This document shows, in pieces, positions 15,252-63,847 of a DNA stretch of 64,000 bases. The notes under the pieces were generated by a model. It searched no databases and had not been told where the DNA came from. It saw only the letters and a list, made by a program, of their open reading frames with translations. How positions within the stretch are numbered: the first letter of the stretch is position 1; every line of letters begins with the position of its first letter. The position numbers and the translations under genes were made by a program. Location: sequence record OP589283.1. One strand, written 5' to 3'.

Positions 15252-18200
15252 TTACATAAATACATCAAAAGGAGTGCGACAACTACTTACAGGAAGAGTA
15301 TCAGGCTCTAAACTGAGTTCATACAGTTCATTACCTGTCACATCATTAAACACGTTACCGAGTTCATGTCCTGCAATGTCTAACATCATTTCTGCTACTT
15401 GGTCTCGACTCCACTGAAGGATGTCCAGTGTAGTAGTACTAATGTTAGGTTGGTCTCCAGTGTCTAATCGCAAACACCAGAAGAAGGTAGGACTGTCTTG
15501 GCCTTTACGGTGAATACGTGCTTTAGTTTGAATCACTTCATAATCCCTATACGGGACATCAATCATAATCAGTTGGTTAGCCATTGTAAGTGGATAGCCT
15601 TCCTTTAGACTTTTGTATGTCGTGATTAACGGGTTGGTATTAGGGTCATTTTCGAACCGTTTAATCTCGCTGTCTGTATTTCCTAGATTCTTACCCGTAA
15701 TAGTAACTGGCTTAAATCCATTAGCAAGAAAGTATTCTTCAGCTGCTTCTACCGCTTCCACATACGTACTGAAAAACAACGTTTTCTTTTCGACATGGTT
15801 AACTAGCTCAATTAATCCAGCGTGCTCGATAATCGCTTTAGCGCATTCTCTTCGAGCTGCACCAAATACGTTACCAATTACTTCCCCTTGAATTTTCAAA
15901 CTCACGTATTTTACCGCGGAACAATTAGAACGAAACTCTAACCGTTCTCTACCTGCTAATACACCTTCTATTTTTTCTTCAACACTTTTACAGAATTTAC
16001 TTTTATCTCCATCTGTAAAGGTATTGAATCCTCGCTTATTGAAGTCATGAACATAACGCTTGTACAATTCAAGTTCTTGTAATGCAGTTGCATCACGTTT
16101 AATCTTTTCTTCGTACTTATCAACACACGCAAGATACTGCGAACGAATAGAAGGAAGGTTAGCTTGATAGAAAGCATAGCGTTCCCGGATGTAGTTCAGC
16201 ATTCTTAAACGGATGTTTTCAATAGTGAATTGTTCGGCTCCTTTAAAGCTGACATTAATCACTTCGGTATCGGGTGCTTCATCCATTCCGTCGATTGCCG
16301 CAATTGTAAACTTGTTACGTCCAATCCGACGAGCAAACAGTTCATTTAAACGCTCTCTACCGCGTCCATACGCATCTTTAAACCGATCCCTAGCCAACCC
16401 TACGAACAACGGGTCTGTTAGGCTAAAAATAGCGTAGGATTCTTTACTGCACGCTTTCAATGGAGTACCACTCATAGGGAGAGTATGGCTAAAGTATCCT
16501 TTGTCAGATAACTCAATGATCATTTGGGTGCGGTTAGAAGTGGGTTCGTTGAAATTATGACATTCGTCTATAATTAATTTAAACTGATTACCTGATTTCT
16601 TATAGAACATCATGAACCGTTCGAATTCTTCAAACCCTTTGTTGGTTAAAAAATCATAATGCAAAATAAAGAATTCAACCGATGTATCTAGTGATAATCC
16701 ACTCATACTTGTCCAGTAAGGTGGTACTACTCTAAACTCTTTATCCAACGTTTCTTTCCATACTTTATCAACCAATTTAGGGGGACAAAGAATAATCGTT
16801 TTTGTGTTGTTCCCATTTAACATACGGGACCACATTAATGACAAAATCGTATTATGTGTCACAATAAAGTCATCAGTGATGTACAAATGACTTGGGTGGT
16901 CAACAGAAATACACTGAGTTAACTCATTAGCACGTTTTTCAATATTGATTATCTCTAATTTGAGATTATCAGAATACTGAGTTTGTGTGGCTCTCTCGCG
17001 CTTATGAGTTAACGTAAACAACTCCTCAGGTCGAGGATACCGAATGGACAATCGATAATCTGTTCTTCCTGATTTCTTTTCTCCTTTGTAAGAGTAATGT
17101 GGGATTCTGGTAGATAACAGTGCTATACCTCCTAAACTCCGCACTAGATACTGCACACCTAAAGCAAGTTGTTTAGAACTGCTTGAGAAACTAATTGTTT
17201 TATTGGTGCCCGATGTACCATCAGTATCCAAAAGACCTTGCAACAACTCCAATCGCTGTTGTTTGTTTGAATTTAAAAGATAGTCTACGGGAATAACTTT
17301 TTCCCAAGAACGTTTACCCATTAAATCCATTTCCCTTAAATCTTTTGTTATGTGAGAATCTACTGCTTTCTTTGTTCTTGGTGTGTTTAATGTAATGTTG
17401 AAAGTTACATCGTCCACCCATTTACAAGAAAGATGGGGCGGCAACAATTTCTGCACCTTATCAAACAACTCTTGATAAGGTTTAGATATGTACGGAGTTG
17501 AGCCAGAAAGACTACCGTCACCCAACAATACACCCATTAAATAAGGATGGATTTTGAATTCTTTGGCTGGTCCATCCTCGGGCTCACACAAAGGGATATA
17601 TATACGTTCATTTTTATTTTTCTTTAGTCTTTGCATTATGTAACGTAAAGACTTGGTGTGCCATCTTTCACCCCACGGCTTACCCTTTACCGCATCTTTA
17701 TTTTTTTCGTAGATGTCCCAAAGATGGTCTGGGTTACAATCTGTGTGACGCCCATCTTTGAAATGCACACGATAGACTTCGGTAATGCCCTGCGGGAATA
17801 CCCCTGTGACTTTGGTATGAGAACCGTCTTTTGCAATAACGGTATCTCCTACCTTGATATCCCCCATTTTCTTCCACCCATTAGGGACTTTAAGTAAAGA
17901 AGATAATGTCTGAGCTTTCCCTGAGCCTGCTTTACCATCTAATAACAACCCTTTTAACTTGTAATTCTTAGTGATTGTTAGGTAACTATCAAGAAATTCT
18001 TTTTGTGTGGGAAAGGGTGTTTTTATAAATTCAGCTAAATAACTTTGTAATGCTTGATAAGGAACTGGATTAATCGTATTTTTAATCCATGTCTCGCTCT
18101 CCAGTAAATCTTTTAACTCAATTAGCTGTTTGCGTTTTGTCGCTGTTCTGCGGACTGTTAGTAATCTGGATACAATGTGGTGAAGTTCTAATAAAAAGAA

Positions 18201-18371
18201 TTCACGAGTACGGATAACACTACCGCTTCGTAAAAACATGTACTTACCAATCACCGAGGTATTATAAAGACGCCCGATGTCGTATTCAAGTTTACGGGCA
18301 TCGATACCTTTAATTTCCACTCCACCCATTTCGTTGATTGTTATTCTCACAGAGAAGAAATCAAATAACAT
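15252..18371 (-). CDS. superfamily 2 (SNF2/DEAD-like) helicase containing an intein
   Basis: Walker A DGKAGSGK|T (after intein removal), LIIDECHNF, MSGTP, FFSTYV, SLKEGYPLT and QTKARIHRKGQ. Confidence 0.9.
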   Translation of the reverse strand: MLFDFFSVRITINEMGGVEIKGIDARKLEYDIGRLYNTSVIGKYMFLRSGSVIRTREFFLLELHHIVSRLLTVRRTATKRKQLIELKDLLESETWIKNTINPVPYQALQSYLAEFIKTPFPTQKEFLDSYLTITKNYKLKGLLLDGKAGSGKAQTLSSLLKVPNGWKKMGDIKVGDTVIAKDGSHTKVTGVFPQGITEVYRVHFKDGRHTDCNPDHLWDIYEKNKDAVKGKPWGERWHTKSLRYIMQRLKKNKNERIYIPLCEPEDGPAKEFKIHPYLMGVLLGDGSLSGSTPYISKPYQELFDKVQKLLPPHLSCKWVDDVTFNITLNTPRTKKAVDSHITKDLREMDLMGKRSWEKVIPVDYLLNSNKQQRLELLQGLLDTDGTSGTNKTISFSSSSKQLALGVQYLVRSLGGIALLSTRIPHYSYKGEKKSGRTDYRLSIRYPRPEELFTLTHKRERATQTQYSDNLKLEIINIEKRANELTQCISVDHPSHLYITDDFIVTHNTILSLMWSRMLNGNNTKTIILCPPKLVDKVWKETLDKEFRVVPPYWTSMSGLSLDTSVEFFILHYDFLTNKGFEEFERFMMFYKKSGNQFKLIIDECHNFNEPTSNRTQMIIELSDKGYFSHTLPMSGTPLKACSKESYAIFSLTDPLFVGLARDRFKDAYGRGRERLNELFARRIGRNKFTIAAIDGMDEAPDTEVINVSFKGAEQFTIENIRLRMLNYIRERYAFYQANLPSIRSQYLACVDKYEEKIKRDATALQELELYKRYVHDFNKRGFNTFTDGDKSKFCKSVEEKIEGVLAGRERLEFRSNCSAVKYVSLKIQGEVIGNVFGAARRECAKAIIEHAGLIELVNHVEKKTLFFSTYVEAVEAAEEYFLANGFKPVTITGKNLGNTDSEIKRFENDPNTNPLITTYKSLKEGYPLTMANQLIMIDVPYRDYEVIQTKARIHRKGQDSPTFFWCLRLDTGDQPNISTTTLDILQWSRDQVAEMMLDIAGHELGNVFNDVTGNELYELSLEPDTLPVSSCRTPFDVFM
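16851..17915 (-). mobile_element. class 3 intein (355 aa, Ala1) with LAGLIDADG homing endonuclease, in helicase Walker A
   Basis: Starts AQTLSSLLKVPNGW; block B DHLW; block F TQCISVD; ends IVTHN followed by Thr; endonuclease motifs YLMGVLLGDGS and LLQGLLDTDGT. Confidence 0.92.
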
Positions 18372-46442: not shown

Positions 46443-49400
46443 ATGAAACAGGCACCTTTATATGAATTGTGGTATCGTAAGCTCGGGTTACGTAAAAAGC
46501 AAAACATTGCTAACCCAATGTTTTTGTCTTTAGCGGAATTGAGTTTACCGTTATACAGCACAATTCATTATTTAGCAAAACATGAAAATGAGTTAGGCCC
46601 CAGCCCAAGTGAAACGTTAATTTCAAATTGGTTGGGCGAAAACATTTACATTAACTTTGTGAACACCTATACTCCTTATATTGGGAGTATTGGCCCTGCT
46701 GTGTTTGATCTACGTAAAAACATTAAGAAATATCGTGCAAGTCATTTTAACTATAGTTGGATTATGAACATCAATGACGTCTATAAACGTCGTGAAAATT
46801 TGATTGTTTGGAACCACGCTTGTGCGAATAAAACGTTCAAAGTAAGAGCAAGTCTTTTTGCTACCTATGAACGTTATTATAATGATTTCCGTAACGTAAT
46901 CGAAAGTGTTAATACCGTTACTGAAAAAGGATTACGTAATCAATTTTTAAGAATTGAACTACCCAATCGGATGCCGAACTTTTTACGTATTAGTGATGAT
47001 TTAAATCATTTTGCTAAGGTGCGTAGAGAATACGCCAAAACCGGCAAGATGATGCTGAATAAAGAAATGATGCGTCAGACAAAAGGCGAAAGTTGCTATT
47101 GGGTATTAGAGTTACTCAGCTTCTTATTAACAGATTTAGCAACTAATAAGAAAGGGGAAGAAGCTGAAGAAAAAATTAAAATAAGTTTATTTAACCTACT
47201 CAATGATGAGTCTAAACATAAATTAAATATTGTGTTTAGTTATCAAGGTACCGGATTTGTCGTTAACCTTGGTTTATTAGAAAGTTGGTTTAAAGAGCTT
47301 CGCGATGATGGTAGTCGTGTTAATGGTTTCAAACGTTTCTATCTTTCTCTTATCAAGTTGTCTAGCACCGAAATGGTTTTAGAGGACGAAAATGAAGAGA
47401 TTAAAAACACTGTCGAGGAGACTACGGAAGAACCAGAGGAACTGGATGAAGATGAGTCAGAGGCGCCCATTGAAAAAGATGAGCAAAAGGTCGCTGTTCA
47501 CGATACTACTCCTATTCTTGATATTTTCGCTGATCAAGTCGATTCTGATGACGGAAGTCTTCAATCCGGAGGAGACGAGGGAGGGGAAGATGATTCTGGA
47601 GAGCCTGCTGAACAGTCGTGGACCGATCCAGTAGACGATAGTCTATTTGAAGAGCCTGAGGTTGCCACTGAGACGGATTCAGGTCGTAATGTATTCGCTG
47701 ACCCTTCCGCAGGTATTGAACGCAGTCTTCGCTTAAAAGGGAAAGAGAACGGTATTAGCGCAAGAGAATACGCTCTCTTTAAAAAGAAATCGGAGTCTTA
47801 TAAAAACATTGTGTTACCTAACGGTGAAACGATGGAAACGTTTATGAAGATAGACGAAAAAGAACTCCGTAATCTTGACGGTAAAATTAAGGGGACTTTT
47901 GAAACCGTAAAAGACCCTTCGTTATTACAGTCTCGTACTTCGGAATTGCGTAAAGGGTACGTGAAGAAGTTTTTACATAAAGACATCATTCGTACTTTAG
48001 TTGCTTTCCAAAACAGTGGTACCGCGTTAACTGATTTGTCTATCACTGAAGAGGGTGACAAAGAAGGGATGTATGAAATTTATAACGCGCAATTCCATCC
48101 TGTTGGGGGAACTGTTAAAACCGTTCCTATTCGCATGCCGAAAGTGCTACCTGACTGCACCATCATGATAGATGGTAATAAAAGCTATTTACAAAACCAA
48201 CGCATGGAACTCCCTATTCGTAAGGTGAGACATGACGAAGTAATGCTATCTAGCTTTTATGGTACACGATTAAGTTTAAAACGCAGCCGTATGGTGAAGG
48301 ACGATTATCATCTTTGGTTATTACGTCAAATCATCAAAGGGGATAAAATCAACGGTTATCAAATTGCATTGGGTCGTAGTAAAACAAGCCACTTAAAGGT
48401 TCCTCAACTTTATTACACGCTTGCAGCCAAATTTAAATCTATTGCATTTGATGACATGACCTTTGTTTTCTCAATGGACACGTTGATTGAAGAAGACCCA
48501 GCGATTGAAAAGTTGAATTCCCCTGATAGTGTAGTCATCGGTAAAAAGGGTGACAAATACATTACATTGGATGCGTTTAACAACGTTTATGTCGGGGATG
48601 AGTTAAAAGGTGGGTTTACTGAGTTAGTTAAAATCGACCAGCGCAAAGCTCCTGTTGATATGGTGAGTTTGTTGTTGAATAACGTAAACTTCCCTATTGT
48701 TATTTTGTTGTGTTATTATTTCGGTATCGATAAACTATTGCAGGTTACCAAAGCAAATTATCGTGTGGTACCGAGTAATGAGAAAACTGTCTTAACCAAT
48801 GACGAATTCAAAGTCGTATTTAACGACGAGACACTGGTCTTTAACCGTAACGACCGGGTGACCACGTTAATCTTTGGTGGATTAGTTGGGTTGAAAAACT
48901 TAAGTAACTTTAACAGAGTTGACTTAAATAACAACGATAACTTGCTTACGGTGATGGGTTCGGAAAGTAAAGCAAAAATCACTCACTTCTATGAAATGGA
49001 ACGGCTGTATCGTTTGTTCATCGACCCTATCACTAAAGATGAATTAATTCGTCTGAAGTACTCTGTTGACTTTGATTATTTGTTGTTGGATGCTGTTGAG
49101 CTATTAAAAGACAGTTATCACCGCAATGAAGTGGAAATTGAAGAGCAACGGATTAGTGGTTATGAACGTTTAGTTGGACACATGTACACGCAACTCTGTC
49201 GTGCTAACCGTGAATACGGTAACAAGACAACAGGTAAGAAAGTTTTCTCATTAAATCCTGATGCTGTGTTGATGGCCATCCAACTGGATACCAGTTTAAA
49301 CCAAGTGGAAGAGGTCAACCCATTCCACCAAATCAAAAGTGATGAGGAGGTTACGTTCGGTGGTACTGGTGGTCGCGGTGACGATGTAATGGTCGCCAGA

Positions 49401-49601
49401 ACCCGTGCTCAGCTACAAAGTTATCGTGGTGTGATTTCTGAAGCGCATAAAGACAACCAAAAGGTGGGGTATGTTACCCACTTAACGTCAGATGCTCGTA
49501 TCAGTGATTATCGTGGTAACATTGATAGCAAAGAAACAATAACCAATGCAGGACTAGCGTCTGTAACAGGTAACTTGTATTACGGTTCCTTTAAAGATGA
49601 T
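46443..49601 (+). CDS. virion RNA polymerase beta subunit N-terminal part (phiKZ gp178-like), exon 1
   Basis: IDGNKSYLQNQR, QVEEVNPF, VTFGGTGGR, GVISEAHKDNQKVG; ends ...GSFKDD. Confidence 0.88.
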
Positions 49602-49942
49602 CAACATAGGGTCCCCTTATTTGGAAACAGATAAGGTGCTATAACCTCTAATTGCTGGGAGGGTTTGTTAAACCTCATTACACCACTGCGTAACTGGAAA
49701 CGGTAAACGTGAAGGTTTGAAAAGTAATGAGCTGAACCTAGTCAGCAGCAAAGCACCTAAGGTATTGTTGAGATAACAAGATACGGTGTGCGTCCAGAGA
49801 CTATCGCTGAAATGCGAGTAGGGGTCTAGTGTGATTCCGAAACGGGGTTTGCTTACCGTGGACTGAAGAAGTCCTATACGGTTGCATGAAATATAGTCCA
49901 CTGTGTTCGATGATTTCTTATGGATAAGAATAGAGCACATTG
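49602..49942 (+). mobile_element. group I intron (341 nt) without ORF
   Basis: P AATTGCTGGGA (49650), Q AGTCAGCAGC (49740), R GTCCAGAGACTA (49792), S GAAATATAGTCC (49888); exon 1 ends GAU, intron ends G; splicing gives DD-PKR in frame. Confidence 0.88.
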
Positions 49943-51049
49943 CCCAAGAGAACCAGCTTCAGTAACGGCCAAGCATCTCAAATCATGGCGTCATCAGGTT
50001 ATCAAGTTAACCCAATGCGCACAGGTTATGAGGTAGTCATGCCACATCGAAACTACGACCTTTACACTAAGGTTGCTGAACAAGATGGGGTGGTTACTGA
50101 AGTTACCGATAAATATTTATTGGTAACTTATAAAGACGGTTCGACAGACACCTACTTGTTAGGTTATGAAGTGGGTTCTGCGGCAGGTGAGTATCATAAG
50201 CACAATAAAGTAACCGATTTAAAAGTAGGTGATAAATTCAAAGCCGGAGAGGTGATTGGATTTAACGATGTGTGGTTTGCTCGTGACTTCTATAATCCAG
50301 GGCAAGTGGCTGCTAAAACAGGTATCTTGACAGGTGTTGCGTTAACCCAAGGGATTAACGTTTACGAAGACAGTATTAGTATTAGTGCTGATTTCGCTAA
50401 AAAGTCAAGCTCCAGCTTCATTAAGCAGATTAGCTTTAGTGCGGCTTTAAAAGACACCATCGTTGAAAAAATCAAAGTGGGGCAAACAGTCGATCATGAC
50501 CAAGTGTTATTTGAGGTCATTGAAGAGAGTGTTGCAGCACTTAACGATGAGAATGAGGACGCGGCTGATATTAACCGTTTAGGCATTCGACAAGTTAAGA
50601 GTAACCACCACGGTGTGATTAAAAAGGTCGAGGTTTCCTACAATGGTGATTATGCTGATATGAGCAGTTCAGTCTTGAAGTTTGTTAAACCTAAAGACAA
50701 AGAAGTTGCTGACTTAGCAAAAGTCACTAAAAGCAAGATTGTTGACAACCGAGTATCAGGTGGTAAAAACGTTCCTCCTGGTCGTATCAAAGTCCGTGTC
50801 TACATTGATGCGGAAGAAAGCAGTGTGGTTGCTGACAAATTTGTAGTGGGTAACCAAATGAAATGTACTGTTAACAGTATTTACACTAAGCGCATGTACA
50901 CTCAATCTGGTATTCCAATTGACCTCACATTCAGTTATAAGAGTTTGTTTGGTCGGATGGTATTGAGTTTACGTGATAAGTTAGTGGGTAACCAGTTAAC
51001 TGAAATCGTTTCAAAACAATTTGTTGATATTTACAGGGGTGAACAATGA
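49943..51049 (+). CDS. virion RNA polymerase beta subunit, exon 2
   Basis: PKRTSF, YEDSISIS (equivalent of bacterial FEDSI) and DKFVVGNQMKCTV (equivalent of GDKMAGRHGNKG). Confidence 0.88.
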   Translation, partial: PKRTSFSNGQASQIMASSGYQVNPMRTGYEVVMPHRNYDLYTKVAEQDGVVTEVTDKYLLVTYKDGSTDTYLLGYEVGSAAGEYHKHNKVTDLKVGDKFKAGEVIGFNDVWFARDFYNPGQVAAKTGILTGVALTQGINVYEDSISISADFAKKSSSSFIKQISFSAALKDTIVEKIKVGQTVDHDQVLFEVIEESVAALNDENEDAADINRLGIRQVKSNHHGVIKKVEVSYNGDYADMSSSVLKFVKPKDKEVADLAKVTKSKIVDNRVSGGKNVPPGRIKVRVYIDAEESSVVADKFVVGNQMKCTVNSIYTKRMYTQSGIPIDLTFSYKSLFGRMVLSLRDKLVGNQLTEIVSKQFVDIYRGEQ

Positions 51050-51915
51050 GTATTGTAAAAGACAACTCGGTTAAAAAGATTCAATCTGCATTAGCCGAGT
51101 GTGAGTTGTACAAGTCAAAGATTGACGGCGCGTGGGGTGGTGGTAGCACTACTGCATTCACTACCTTAGTAAGAGGGATGTCTGACAGTGTCGAAATTCA
51201 GTTTACTGATGTCAAAGATGACAATGCTGTTATTTGTGACGTTCAACGCGTATTGAAAGGGATTGGGTTGTACCAAGGTGCTGTAGATGGCGCGTGGGGC
51301 AAAGGCTGTGTAAATGCTATGGATAACCTCGTTAATCATTACAAACGCAATCACGGTTTACCTACTTATGATTTACCTTGGAGTAAATCCGTCTCCCCTG
51401 AATTTATTAACCAGATTTACGTATTAGCACGTGAACACGGCTACTCTTATGAGTGGACACAATGGCTGATGTCATGCATGCATTTTGAAACAGGTGGGAC
51501 TTTCAGTTCTACTATTCAAAATGGTGCAGGTGCTAAATATTTTGGATTAATTCAATTTGGCACTGCTGCTGCATCTGATTTGGGAACCACCGTTGAAGAA
51601 TTGACCAAGTTAACCCCGGTAGAACAATTACACTGGGTGTTCGCTTACTTCAATTTATGGCGTAAGCGTGGCAAAACTTACACTCAATTAGAAGACTTGT
51701 ATCTTACCATTTTTTATCCTGCTGCGGTAGGTAAAAATGCGGACACAGTTATCTTCTTAAAAGACACTGTGGGTTATCGTCAAAACAACGGGTTTGATTT
51801 CGATAAGAACGGGGAGATTACCGTAGGTGAAATCTGCGATCGTATCTATAAAGTTCATTTCGATGGGCTTTTACCTATTAACCGCCGAGTACAAAAGGGT
51901 GTAACATGGAATTAG
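51046..51915 (+). CDS. modular endolysin: two peptidoglycan-binding repeats plus lysozyme-like catalytic domain
   Basis: DGAWGGGS and DGAWGKGC repeats; MHFETGGTF, FGLIQFG, EQLHWV and YLTIFYPA motifs. Confidence 0.85.
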   Translation: MSIVKDNSVKKIQSALAECELYKSKIDGAWGGGSTTAFTTLVRGMSDSVEIQFTDVKDDNAVICDVQRVLKGIGLYQGAVDGAWGKGCVNAMDNLVNHYKRNHGLPTYDLPWSKSVSPEFINQIYVLAREHGYSYEWTQWLMSCMHFETGGTFSSTIQNGAGAKYFGLIQFGTAAASDLGTTVEELTKLTPVEQLHWVFAYFNLWRKRGKTYTQLEDLYLTIFYPAAVGKNADTVIFLKDTVGYRQNNGFDFDKNGEITVGEICDRIYKVHFDGLLPINRRVQKGVTWN

Positions 51916-60613: not shown

Positions 60614-63600
60614 TTACGCTGCTTTTTTTCTTTGCATCATGCGTTTGTTACGTGCTAGTTTAGCATCTTCCAAAATACTGTCCACAGTAATTGTGTTACG
60701 TGTGCTGTCTTCTGGAATGAGTTTTCCTAACTTAATAATTTCAGCTTCCAATCTTGCTGCTAAAATATTGTCGTTAGTTGCCATCAGCTCTTCGGTGTAC
60801 TGTCTAATCTTGTCCCTGATTTTATCAATAAATGCAATCAGTTCAGGGTCGAGTTTAGCGTAAGCTTCATTGCTGTCATTGGCCAGTAAGTTTTTGGTAT
60901 CAATCAATGCTAATCCTGTTGGAATGTTGTACATTTGTTTACTGACACCTAACTTAATGAACCAGTACGTTAACAACCACGCAATAACCAAGTCGTCGTG
61001 TTTATTAACATCGTGGTCAATACGCCCACCTTTAACACGCAGATTGATTAATTCATCACACAGTTTATCGTAACACAAACCATAACCAGTCACAGCAACC
61101 GCTTCTTGAATATACCCGTACATTGTCGCACGACTACTCGCGTTAGTATTAAACCCGAAGTGTTTCTTATATTTCAAGTAGAAGTCTTTATCACGGTATT
61201 GTGGTTTAGTGCGTTTAATCTCATCAATTTCCTTAGCGTATCTAACCGGGTCTTGATAGATTTGGTTAAACAGTTTTTGGAAGGGGTCTAACCCTAGTGA
61301 GTTAAGACTAATCAAGAGACTATCAATCATGTGATGCGCGTAGTTACGTTCAATGATTAACATAGAGTTAGGGATGGTCGATAATACATCCACCAAAACG
61401 CCTCCAACGTCATCTAGGAACGCTAAGGGGTATCTTCCTACTCCCACTACCTTACCTGTTCTAAAGCTCCGCATAACCACAGTACAGGCGTCTGAGTTAA
61501 TTGCAGAAGAAGTATCGCATCCCACTAGGATAAAATCGTTATAAGAAGGGGAACACATATTTGCAAATTCTTCTTTGGAAATAAACATATCCAAGAATAA
61601 TCCACTGCGTCGGTATTCCTTACTCCACATCACGTTTCGTTTAGCTTCACTAATCCCTACCCGTGTACGGTCATCAAACAGTTTATCTTCACCGTCTTCT
61701 ACCCACATTAACAGTAAGTCGATTTTAGCCCTACCGAGACCTAACCCTAGTTGGTCAATTGTCTTCTTCACCCAATCAGGACCTTTACCCAATTGCATGT
61801 AGTTATAAACCATAGACACACTAGGAGAAGTAGTAGCACGGGGAGATGCTTTAATCAACCTATCAATCAAATGACTTTCTGAGAAACTGTCGAAGAACTT
61901 TTCTCGCCATTCAGTAGAGTTCATCACCTTATCATACATGTATTCACCAGAAGGGTGTAATACGGTGTTAGGTGTGGTGATATAACTGATGCCATAAGGT
62001 AATCCGGCATTACGACAGTTTTCCATTTCTGTCAATGCTGAAGGTGTACAACCGTCGACAATCGCCCAAATCCAGTTAATATAACTTGGTTCGTCGATAG
62101 TGGTGGTTCCTACGGTTAAACCCCGCCCTAAGTCACCTGCGGCAGCCTCACCCTGTTGCGGCACACTGATAGTCATGACGTTAGTTTCAGCATCACCAAA
62201 ACTACGATAAGTTAAATACGTACCCGCGTCTTTATCTCGGTAGGTGGGGTTTACCAAATACTGAGGTATACAACTTCGGATAGATTTAACCGCTTCAATA
62301 AATTGAGCACGGTTATCTGACTTCAACGTAATAATGTGAGATTTATATCCCCGCCCTACGATATACGTTAACCAGAAGTTAATCACTTGGACTGAAACGG
62401 TGTTATGGGTAACAATGAAGTCATCGGTCACATACAGTTGATCTTGTGAATCCACTTCGATGCAGTATGCTTCATTGTGATGTGAATACTCCACTTTTTC
62501 AATGTACAACGTGTTATCTTGAGGTGGAACTTCCACTTTCTTGTACTTGAAATATTCCATGTCTTCAGAAAGTGTAATGAACAATCCCTCAGGAGTTTCT
62601 TTAGCAGTGCCTCCTAAGCTCCGTACGACATATTTCATGTCATGACGTAACTTTGTATTACTTAATGATAAAAACACTTTACCGTCGATTATAGACCCAT
62701 TAGCATCCATAAATCCTTGTACAAGGTCAAGACGTTGCTGAATACTTGCTTTAGTATAATCTGAAGGTAACCCTACATCCTGATAATTCGCATTTGGGTG
62801 TTTGTTGGCGATGTATAAATATTCACCATGTTGTTTCACCGTAAAGCAGTCAGGAGTGTGTGGACGCATTTGTTCAACAGTGATACCATCTTTTTTCATT
62901 ACTGTGCTGGTTACATCCATCCCTCCTAAGAAATAACCGTAGAAATAAGAATCCAGTAATTTCTGTTCTTTAAACTCAGTGGGGTGAATTAATGGTAATG
63001 AAAGTGTTTTGGGTTCATAATCTTTCTCTTTTAACAAGGCTTCAATTTGAGCAGTGGAATAATCTACTATACCACCAGTACGGCCTCGTTTCTTATCGTG
63101 AACTGTCCAAAGATGTTTAGTCCCTGTATTCAGTTTACGACCATCGCTTGTATGGAGAGTGTAGAGACGTTTAATCCCCTGAGGATGGATACCAATAACA
63201 CGGGACGTTTCTCCATCCACCGTGGCGATTTCATCACCAATGTTTAACTGTTCGATTTTACGCCAGTCACCCTTAGATGTTAAAATCTTCGTACCCTTCT
63301 CTTGCATCTTACCTTGTTGGCGAGGCATGATCATGTAGCTGGTAATGTGGTTTAAATAGCTCCAAATAAAACTGATATTACCCCGATTAGCCTTAAACCG
63401 AATAGTGGGTTTTAACTTACATACCTCACGTAAGAAATACCAGAAGTTACTTTTACATTCTTCATAAATCATCGTCTTCTGTTCATTAGTGAGGTCTTCA
63501 CTAAAGGGGTCAACACCTTTTAATAACGGGTTGTTTAACTGAAGCATAAAGTAATAGTTTTTATTACCTTGTAGTCTAAACAACTCTGATGTTCTTAAAA

Positions 63601-63847
63601 AAGATTCATTGGTTGTTTCTAAATCTGGTGCGGCTTTGTAGTTATAGAAATCTTTTAAGAACCGCACTGTTTTAATAGAAGATAAACTATCTTCGTAAAA
63701 GTGTGCCAATATTTTCTCATCTTCTGTTCTTGATGTGGAATCAATTCTTTTCTTTTCGTCATCATAAAGAACGGTAGGAAGGATAGGATTACCGAGGTGA
63801 GCTAATATTTGTTTAGCCACTTCTAAGTCTTGAATAGGTTGTGACAT
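60614..63847 (-). CDS. terL: terminase large subunit (phiKZ gp25-like) containing an intein
   Basis: FWYFLRE, Walker A MPRQQGK|T, Walker B TTTIDEP, YITTP, nuclease VGCDTS and KHDDLVIAW. Confidence 0.92.
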   Translation of the reverse strand: MSQPIQDLEVAKQILAHLGNPILPTVLYDDEKKRIDSTSRTEDEKILAHFYEDSLSSIKTVRFLKDFYNYKAAPDLETTNESFLRTSELFRLQGNKNYYFMLQLNNPLLKGVDPFSEDLTNEQKTMIYEECKSNFWYFLREVCKLKPTIRFKANRGNISFIWSYLNHITSYMIMPRQQGKMQEKGTKILTSKGDWRKIEQLNIGDEIATVDGETSRVIGIHPQGIKRLYTLHTSDGRKLNTGTKHLWTVHDKKRGRTGGIVDYSTAQIEALLKEKDYEPKTLSLPLIHPTEFKEQKLLDSYFYGYFLGGMDVTSTVMKKDGITVEQMRPHTPDCFTVKQHGEYLYIANKHPNANYQDVGLPSDYTKASIQQRLDLVQGFMDANGSIIDGKVFLSLSNTKLRHDMKYVVRSLGGTAKETPEGLFITLSEDMEYFKYKKVEVPPQDNTLYIEKVEYSHHNEAYCIEVDSQDQLYVTDDFIVTHNTVSVQVINFWLTYIVGRGYKSHIITLKSDNRAQFIEAVKSIRSCIPQYLVNPTYRDKDAGTYLTYRSFGDAETNVMTISVPQQGEAAAGDLGRGLTVGTTTIDEPSYINWIWAIVDGCTPSALTEMENCRNAGLPYGISYITTPNTVLHPSGEYMYDKVMNSTEWREKFFDSFSESHLIDRLIKASPRATTSPSVSMVYNYMQLGKGPDWVKKTIDQLGLGLGRAKIDLLLMWVEDGEDKLFDDRTRVGISEAKRNVMWSKEYRRSGLFLDMFISKEEFANMCSPSYNDFILVGCDTSSAINSDACTVVMRSFRTGKVVGVGRYPLAFLDDVGGVLVDVLSTIPNSMLIIERNYAHHMIDSLLISLNSLGLDPFQKLFNQIYQDPVRYAKEIDEIKRTKPQYRDKDFYLKYKKHFGFNTNASSRATMYGYIQEAVAVTGYGLCYDKLCDELINLRVKGGRIDHDVNKHDDLVIAWLLTYWFIKLGVSKQMYNIPTGLALIDTKNLLANDSNEAYAKLDPELIAFIDKIRDKIRQYTEELMATNDNILAARLEAEIIKLGKLIPEDSTRNTITVDSILEDAKLARNKRMMQRKKAA
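62402..63307 (-). mobile_element. class 3 intein (302 aa, Met1) with degenerate LAGLIDADG domain, in terminase Walker A
   Basis: Starts MQEKGTKILTSKG; block B KHLW; block F AYCIEVD; ends IVTHN followed by Thr; endonuclease motifs YFLGGM and FMDANG lack the catalytic acids. Confidence 0.9.

Follow-up and report, generated by a model that had tools for sequence, protein, structure and literature searches.

Shewanella phage FishSpeaker (OP589283.1) is a jumbo phage of 203 kb whose host is the laboratory strain S. oneidensis MR-1 (GenBank record). We analyzed a stretch of 64,000 nucleotides of this record, hereafter the window, in which the gene of the large terminase subunit (TerL) encodes a precursor of 1077 amino acids (aa). 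Across this gene, window and record are 100% identical. The precursor is split by an insert of 302 aa, a class 3 intein that begins with Met and carries a LAGLIDADG-type domain within it. The insert is positioned exactly between the Lys and the Thr of the Walker A motif of TerL (PRQQGK/T, the slash marking the junction). In GenBank the gene is named only terminase large subunit, and the intein is absent from the FishSpeaker annotation.

The boundaries of the intein are exact, because intein-less TerL homologues run through PRQQGKTV without interruption. Such homologues comprise 772-787 aa, as found in Vibrio phages VP4B and pTD1 and in Erwinia phage AH04. For TerL homologues we employed the best 120 of 161 matches, which are representatives of 90%-identity clusters and mostly of metagenomic origin. 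This set contained 25 intein-less homologues, and a contiguous PRQxGKTV was present in 10 of the 11 that were inspected. The first 180 residues of the precursor, i.e. the N-extein, match phrog_2 (terminase large subunit) with an E-value of 1e-37. The C-extein of 595 aa gave no match in Pfam, in PHROG (E ≤ 1e-5) or, at the level of sequence, in the Protein Data Bank (PDB). Its identity as a terminase follows from the match of the N-extein and from the named orthologues, which include the terminases of Vibrio phage VP4B and Erwinia phage AH04; identity to the TerL orthologues ranges from 48 to 94%. The ATPase and nuclease parts of this jumbo-phage TerL family are poorly covered by current profiles.

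A class 3 intein in the Walker A motif

The insert carries the Trp-Cys-Thr (WCT) triplet of class 3 inteins (Trp at position 12 of block B, Cys at position 4 of block F and Thr at position 5 of block G), with W67 located in KHLW, C282 in AYCIEV and T300 in VTHN. It ends in THN/T, i.e. in a C-terminal His-Asn followed by Thr at position +1, for which class 3 calls for Thr or Ser, and its residue 1, Met181 of the precursor, is none of Cys, Ser and Thr, in line with the definition and mechanism of class 3 (PMC2807308, PMC5222942). At each of the positions H65, W67, C282, T300, H301 and N302, at least 80% of the 81 clade sequences analyzed agree in their residue. A profile of the intein and its relatives had its best PDB matches in two solved inteins of class 3, 6BS8 (E 7e-26) and 6RIX (E 2.6e-25), and the HxW, C and THN residues of the FishSpeaker intein align with their equivalents in both of them in the profile alignment. 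A preliminary description, made from the DNA sequence alone, had already reported Met as the first residue together with the WCT triplet, which is confirmed by the junction seen in the intein-less alleles and by the alignment with 6BS8 and 6RIX.

In Pfam, the TerL intein produced only weak matches to Hom_end_hint and Hint_2, just under the thresholds, and no match to LAGLIDADG_3 (PF14528) at E ≤ 0.1. An AlphaFold2 model, built from a 19-row alignment, reached a mean predicted local distance difference test score (pLDDT) of 92.5 and a predicted template modelling score (pTM) of 0.91. It shows a β-rich Hint domain, formed by residues 1-104 and about 266-302, and an inserted domain with two halves, residues 120-168 and 189-245, each made up of helices and strands, in line with the pseudo-dimeric α/β fold of LAGLIDADG endonucleases. 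A Foldseek search with this model revealed PI-SceI as the top match (E 8.8e-15, query-normalised template modelling (TM) score of 0.65), together with matches to TliVMA, PI-PfuI and I-DmoI. The splicing part matches the class 3 DnaB inteins 6bs8, 6rix and 6riy with target-normalised TM scores of 0.79-0.80. As judged from the model, the fold of a LAGLIDADG nuclease is kept despite the loss of the active site, and we refer to this part of the intein as the dead domain (see below).

From the TerL homologues we obtained 96 inteins located at the site that is occupied in FishSpeaker. Their position 1 is occupied by Met in 24 cases, Leu in 22, Ala in 14, Phe in 11 and Tyr in 8, and more rarely by Glu and Pro (5 each), Gly (3), Gln (2), Asp (1) and Cys (1). 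At a single site, position 1 of class 3 inteins thus tolerates at least all of these residues. This variety agrees with the published mechanism, because the side chain has no chemical role there; being outside the chemistry, Met is merely one tolerated residue. Met1 occurs also in inteins of other host proteins. The preliminary description was right in considering Met1 as non-nucleophilic, but these counts do not bear it out as a special feature. A role of Met1 as an internal start codon was considered as well and dropped, as the orthologues have L, F, Y, A and other residues at this position.

The family to which the intein belongs is large. Among 1.84 billion representative proteins, phmmer yielded 9673 matches at E ≤ 0.001 and 5185 at E ≤ 1e-10, and tblastn located the family in 411 phage records. 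Its host proteins are P-loop proteins of diverse types, namely SNF2 and DnaB helicases, PhoH, terminases, FtsH, ClpB and RecA. We extracted 527 family inteins, 524 of which end in HN; the +1 residue is Thr in 438, Ser in 82 and Cys in 7, and with a refined N boundary 405 follow GK. Residue 1 is Ala in 276 of them, Pro in 52, Leu in 42, Met in 33 and Glu in 27, with others being rarer, and the consensus of the family at the C-terminus reads DDFIVTHN. Some metagenomic proteins (P0133, P0147, P0278 and others) contain two or three family inteins in one polypeptide. The family was defined by Tori et al. 2010, who list helicases and phage terminase large subunits as host proteins and give the P-loop as the usual place of insertion (PMC2807308), and the Lys/Thr position is the classic P-loop insertion (Kelley et al. 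2016, PMC5050341). For class 3 inteins of phages, extein switching, decaying nuclease domains and mini-inteins have already been described (bioRxiv 10.1101/2025.01.02.630785). With its non-nucleophilic Met1, the FishSpeaker insert is an ordinary class 3 member of this large, described family.

Table 1 Features of the TerL gene, of the helicase gene used for comparison and of two further genes of the window. Positions refer to the window; ORF, open reading frame; ω, ratio of nonsynonymous to synonymous substitution rates.
Feature	Position	Strand	Remarks
TerL precursor ORF, 1077 aa	60614..63847, stop codon included	-	ORF listing; GenBank: terminase large subunit
N-extein, precursor residues 1-180	63308..63847	-	Walker A residues PRQQGK at its end (63308-63325)
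Class 3 intein, 302 aa (P0001), precursor residues 181-482	62402..63307	-	between PRQQGK and TVSVQV
N-terminal Hint (splicing) lobe, intein residues 1-104	62996..63307	-	blocks A and B; Pfam, model, ω 0.11
Intein Met1 codon	63305-63307	-	
Block B His65	63113-63115	-	
Block B Trp67	63107-63109	-	
Dead LAGLIDADG-type domain, intein residues 105-245	62573..62995	-	alignments, model, Foldseek
Motif 1 remnant, Y121-D131	62915-62947	-	Asp replaced by G129
Motif 2 remnant, L195-S205	62693-62725	-	Asp replaced by N203
Block-H-like MKYVVRSLGGTAK	62600-62638	-	in dead domain
Linker and C-terminal Hint lobe, intein residues 246-302	62402..62572	-	blocks F and G; ω 0.10
Block F Cys282	62462-62464	-	
Block G Thr300-His301-Asn302	62402-62410	-	
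C-extein, 595 aa	60617..62401	-	begins with Thr (62399-62401), the nucleophile at +1, by which Walker A becomes complete (GK-T)
SNF2-type helicase ORF	15252..18371	-	intein in its Walker A at GSGK/A...HN/T
Helicase intein, 355 aa, Ala1	16851..17915	-	LAGLIDADG motifs GDG and DTDG intact; comparator
RNA polymerase beta-subunit homologue	46443-49634	+	phrog_3148, E 7e-269
ORF of 2337 aa	36089-43102	-	

Nuclease motifs, selection and inheritance of the insert

The intein in the SNF2-type helicase of the same window served as comparator. It retains both LAGLIDADG motifs and matches Pfam LAGLIDADG_3 with an E-value of 2.7e-9. The two inteins are homologous over their full length, with 25% identity and a BLASTP E-value of 3e-27. 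With 302 versus 355 aa, the TerL intein is 53 aa shorter. In active LAGLIDADG enzymes, both LAGLIDADG helices end in a catalytic Asp or Glu. At motif 1, VLLGDG of the helicase intein corresponds to YFLGGM in the TerL intein, with G129 taking the place of the Asp; at motif 2, LLDTDG corresponds to FMDANG, with N203 taking the place of the Asp. A block-H-like motif of the YVVRSLGG type is shared, as MKYVVRSLGG of the TerL intein matches VQYLVRSLGG of the helicase intein. The difference in length, the two altered motifs and the block-H-like match had all been pointed out before, and the lengths and alignments agree with them throughout.

Of the 96 TerL inteins, eight with a length of 346-360 aa have kept GDG and DTDG, e.g. 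those of Aeromonas phages AerS_266 and CF8. Both catalytic Asp are missing in 87 of the 87 inteins of 250-323 aa. The TerL site furthermore presents a deletion series, with inteins of 255-257 aa in which part of the nuclease domain is gone and a mini-intein of 156 aa (P0452); the TerL homologues of this series are P0452, P0396, P0399 and P0453. The median isoelectric point (pI) is 6.1 for the dead TerL inteins versus 8.7 for the intact ones, and for the FishSpeaker dead domain it is 6.6 versus 9.5 for the domain of the helicase intein. This lower pI suggests that DNA binding may have been lost as well.

Selection was assessed on the DNA of ten TerL relatives, in sets of 11 and of the 4 closest sequences. 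Nei-Gojobori pairwise dN/dS for the four closest genes was mostly unusable owing to saturated synonymous sites, and was for this reason replaced by codon maximum likelihood (GY+F3X4) on fixed topologies. The dead domain, Hint and the exteins had ω values of 0.18, 0.10 and 0.09, respectively, in the set of 11, and of 0.08, 0.02 and 0.04 in the set of the 4 closest. For the dead domain, ω = 1 was rejected in both sets, with 2ΔlnL (twice the difference in log likelihood, lnL) amounting to 330 and 186, respectively, and a free tree search with the dead domain alone gave an ω of 0.15. The domain thus evolves about twice as fast as its surroundings, yet far from neutrally. At 21 of its 141 positions, the same residue is present in at least 80% of the 81 sequences, among them Y121, G124, R192, L195 and D201 as well as the YxxRxLGGTA stretch. 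Active relatives show conservation at most of these positions, too, which points to a folding constraint. According to the codon models, purifying selection acts on the dead domain.

In a tree of 121 TerL exteins, FishSpeaker falls into a 100%-supported clade of 75 members, and all 75 carry the dead-type intein; among the best 120 of 161 matches, empty and intact alleles lie solely outside this clade. Within the dead group (81 sequences), the inteins share a mean identity of 40% and the exteins of 67%, and the pairwise identities of inteins and exteins are correlated (rho 0.88, Mantel p 0.001). Such co-divergence fits vertical descent. Inteins of the same kind are found at the same site in gp011 of Pseudomonas phage EL (38.8% identity, Gln as residue 1) and in Erwinia phages RisingSun and Joad (36.6% identity). 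Outside the dead clade, the metagenomic TerL homologues P0460, with an intact 360-aa intein at Walker A, and P0458, which has no intein, possess identical exteins. In this pair the intein was gained or lost very recently, which shows that TerL inteins of the intact type are mobile now.

The preliminary description had seen a homing nuclease caught in decay. The active site is indeed lost, but erosion does not appear to be ongoing: the dead type shared by 87 inteins and throughout the 75-member clade, together with an ω of 0.08-0.18, indicates that the loss is old and that the remnant has been stabilised. Elsewhere in the window, we found a homologue of the RNA polymerase beta subunit and an ORF of 2337 aa (Table 1). 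These two ORFs and the EL/RisingSun-like TerL suggest that FishSpeaker is part of the phiKZ/EL-like jumbo group.

Origin, splicing and persistence of the insert

FishSpeaker possesses a third class 3 intein of 359 aa with intact GDG/DTDG motifs, which lies outside the window at positions 50513-51589 of the record. Its host is P0272, an SF2 helicase of 892 aa (phrog_16, Helicase_C), and it is 64-66% identical to the intein of the SNF2-type helicase. In an intein tree of 108 rows, the TerL intein is placed within a clade of 19 TerL inteins with a support of 97 in the Shimodaira-Hasegawa-like approximate likelihood ratio test (SH-aLRT). The helicase intein and the P0272 intein form a pair (99) that is nested in a clade of jumbo-phage helicase inteins (96). 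A tree of 34 rows supported the TerL clade with 100/100 and the helicase pair with 100/99. Forcing both FishSpeaker lineages into sisterhood on this 34-row subset lowered lnL by 105 and was rejected by the approximately unbiased (AU) test (p 8e-10). All TerL inteins are grouped with the jumbo-phage helicase inteins by a split of weak support (SH-aLRT 92).

Whether the two inteins are sisters had been raised in the preliminary description, which proposed either a shared ancestry of the two or an ectopic jump between P-loop genes. According to these trees, they belong to different, well-supported clades of the same large family. They are thus not sisters as judged from their sequences, and common ancestry holds at the level of the family. 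A jump between the helicase and TerL genes finds no support, given the separate clades and the pairing of the helicase intein with that of P0272. The latter is the true sister of the helicase intein, which places the within-genome link between P-loop genes there and not in TerL.

In GenBank, the intein-bearing SF2 helicase P0272 is labelled 'terminase large subunit', probably because phage protein families built on inteins carry the names of host proteins. We observed that phrog_19299, phrog_36964, phrog_15, phrog_510 and phrog_50 match only the intein parts of the helicases and of TerL; their names include 'terminase large subunit', 'DNA primase' and 'DnaC-like helicase loader'. Such intein-matching PHROG families are likely a source of wrong names in phage records. 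In EL-like phages, the same intein-bearing genes are variously labelled RNA polymerase beta subunit, helicase and terminase.

We consider it probable that the FishSpeaker insert is an old class 3 (WCT) intein at the P-loop site of TerL, which has lost its mobility and belongs to a lineage of FishSpeaker/EL/RisingSun-like jumbo phages. The insert splits the ATP-binding loop, and TerL would therefore work only after splicing. From the conserved residues and the literature on class 3 (PMC2807308, PMC5222942), the following pathway can be proposed. Cys282 of block F would attack the Lys180-Met181 bond, aided by His65 and Trp67, which would give the first branched thioester. The N-extein would then be handed over to Thr+1, cyclisation of Asn302 would release the intein, and the ester would rearrange into the GK-T peptide bond, by which Walker A would be restored. 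Having lost both metal-binding Asp and its basic charge, the element is most likely unable to home any longer, and would be passed on vertically with the TerL gene. The dead domain would be held folded by purifying selection, since a misfolded insert would block the splicing of an essential protein, and this cost of misfolding is most likely the reason for its persistence. Clean deletions that preserve splicing would be rare, and missense changes that unfold the domain would block the maturation of an essential enzyme.

Several points weigh against this explanation. The forms of 255-257 and 156 aa imply that splicing does not strictly depend on the dead domain in every background. Splicing, the loss of nuclease activity and the loss of DNA binding are all deduced from sequences and a structural model. 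The deep branches that join the dead clade and the intact TerL inteins are weakly supported in both trees. Moreover, the clade counts derive from the best 120 of 161 representatives, among which rare intein-less alleles could be missed, and the ω values are rough, as synonymous sites were saturated in most comparisons, though they stay far below 1 in every partition.

Other readings of the insert have to be weighed against an old, immobile intein. One would make the TerL and helicase inteins sisters, or have the TerL intein derive from a recent ectopic jump between the two P-loop genes of the phage, with its nuclease eroding now. Both inteins are class 3 at the GK/T position, the C-terminal DDFIVTHN/T and the type of nuclease domain are common to both (E 3e-27), and extein switching of class 3 inteins via nucleotide-binding sites is documented in actinophages (bioRxiv 10.1101/2025.01.02.630785). 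However, DDFIVTHN is the consensus of the family, and 25% identity is no higher than the 26-32% that the TerL intein shares with hundreds of P-loop inteins of unrelated hosts. The two inteins fall into separate clades with 97-100% support, their sisterhood is rejected (ΔlnL 105, AU p 8e-10), and the helicase intein instead pairs with that of P0272. With the loss of the active site being common to the whole TerL clade and ω far below 1, we regard this reading as largely refuted and highly improbable. Alternatively, the LAGLIDADG domain might still act as an endonuclease or nickase, through non-canonical residues (D131, N203) or a partner protein, so that the intein homes. A folded domain in the model and purifying selection would be compatible with this, and FishSpeaker and the two relatives closest to it have D131, two residues past the position that is normally catalytic, but D131 is already absent in P0005, a relative with 59% identity. 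The catalytic positions vary freely (G, A, S, N and others in motif 1; N, K, Q, R, E, S and others in motif 2), and the net charge is acidic to neutral, unlike that of intact relatives. Moreover, an Asp-to-Asn exchange at the catalytic position abolishes cleavage in the LAGLIDADG enzymes that have been studied. Given also the co-divergence of intein and extein and the lack of empty target alleles in the 75-member clade among the best 120 of 161 matches, retained activity seems very unlikely.

A further possibility is that the dead domain has acquired a new role to the benefit of the phage, e.g. as a sensor (of DNA, redox state, temperature or a partner protein) or as a docking module that times the maturation of TerL. 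The intein would then be a fixed regulatory part of the packaging motor in EL/RisingSun/FishSpeaker-like jumbo phages. Its fixation in 75 of 75 clade members, purifying selection with 21 of 141 positions conserved at 80% or more (YxxRxLGGTA included) and the conditional splicing of P-loop inteins reported for other proteins (PMC5050341, PMC6195587) speak for this idea. The conserved positions are, however, mostly those of active relatives, i.e. helix packing and block H, which fits a folding constraint; the domain's rate of evolution exceeds the rates of Hint and the exteins, and relatives with inteins of 255 and 156 aa exist. We therefore judge a new role to be unlikely. That the insert no longer splices and has become a permanent domain of TerL, or that the gene is a pseudogene, is hardly credible: the splicing residues are conserved without exception, the insert parts the Lys of Walker A from the Thr, which without splicing would leave a broken ATPase, FishSpeaker was isolated as a viable phage, and the exteins are under strong purifying selection (ω 0.04-0.09).

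Comparison with known inteins

Considered as an old and immobile class 3 element, the FishSpeaker TerL intein is modestly new in three respects. It documents Met at residue 1 together with the range of residues found at that position, its dead nuclease domain is fixed and apparently under purifying selection across a large clade of jumbo-phage TerL proteins, and it was unannotated in its record. Like the prototype of class 3, the DnaB intein of mycobacteriophage Bethlehem, and like Msm DnaBi1 (6BS8) and MchDnaB1 (6RIX), it has a non-nucleophilic residue 1 and resides in the P-loop of an ATPase. With these prototype and solved inteins it shares the His and Trp of block B, the Cys of block F, the Thr-His-Asn of block G and Thr at +1. 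It differs from the usual class 3 intein in having Met and not Ala as residue 1 (33 versus 276 of the 527 family inteins), and from the solved class 3 mini-inteins in bearing a dead LAGLIDADG domain.

The TerL1-a inteins of mycobacteriophages likewise have TerL as host and the Lys/Thr site of Walker A, where splicing rebuilds the ATPase (PMC5050341). FishSpeaker TerL, however, represents a different, jumbo-phage family, and in contrast to the sporadic TerL1-a inteins the FishSpeaker type is fixed, and most likely immobile, across a whole clade. Orthologous inteins of cultured phages are those of EL gp011, RisingSun and Joad, which have the same site (PRQQGK/...HN/TVSVQV), the WCT residues and degenerate LAGLIDADG motifs at 37-39% identity; EL has Gln as residue 1, where FishSpeaker has Met. 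In GenBank, the EL, RisingSun and Joad genes are labelled helicase or terminase, and the feature tables examined carry no note of an intein. The inteins of phage EL are presumably entries of InBase.

The combination of Hint and LAGLIDADG domains is that of PI-SceI and of intein-borne LAGLIDADG endonucleases in general, with PI-SceI being matched in a profile search at an E-value of 8e-16. Unlike this group, the FishSpeaker domain is devoid of both catalytic acidic residues, about 50 aa more compact and acidic to neutral in charge. The wider TerL family offers one alignable set with all stages of intein life, and its dead form, being under measurable purifying selection, offers a handy test case from nature for the question of why a nuclease domain without use is retained. 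In agreement with the model of a homing cycle of selfish endonuclease elements (invasion, fixation, degeneration, loss), empty, intact, dead, truncated and mini-intein stages are all found in this family. At variance with this model, the dead stage persists, with its fold apparently under purifying selection, in a group whose exteins have diverged to about 60-70% identity.

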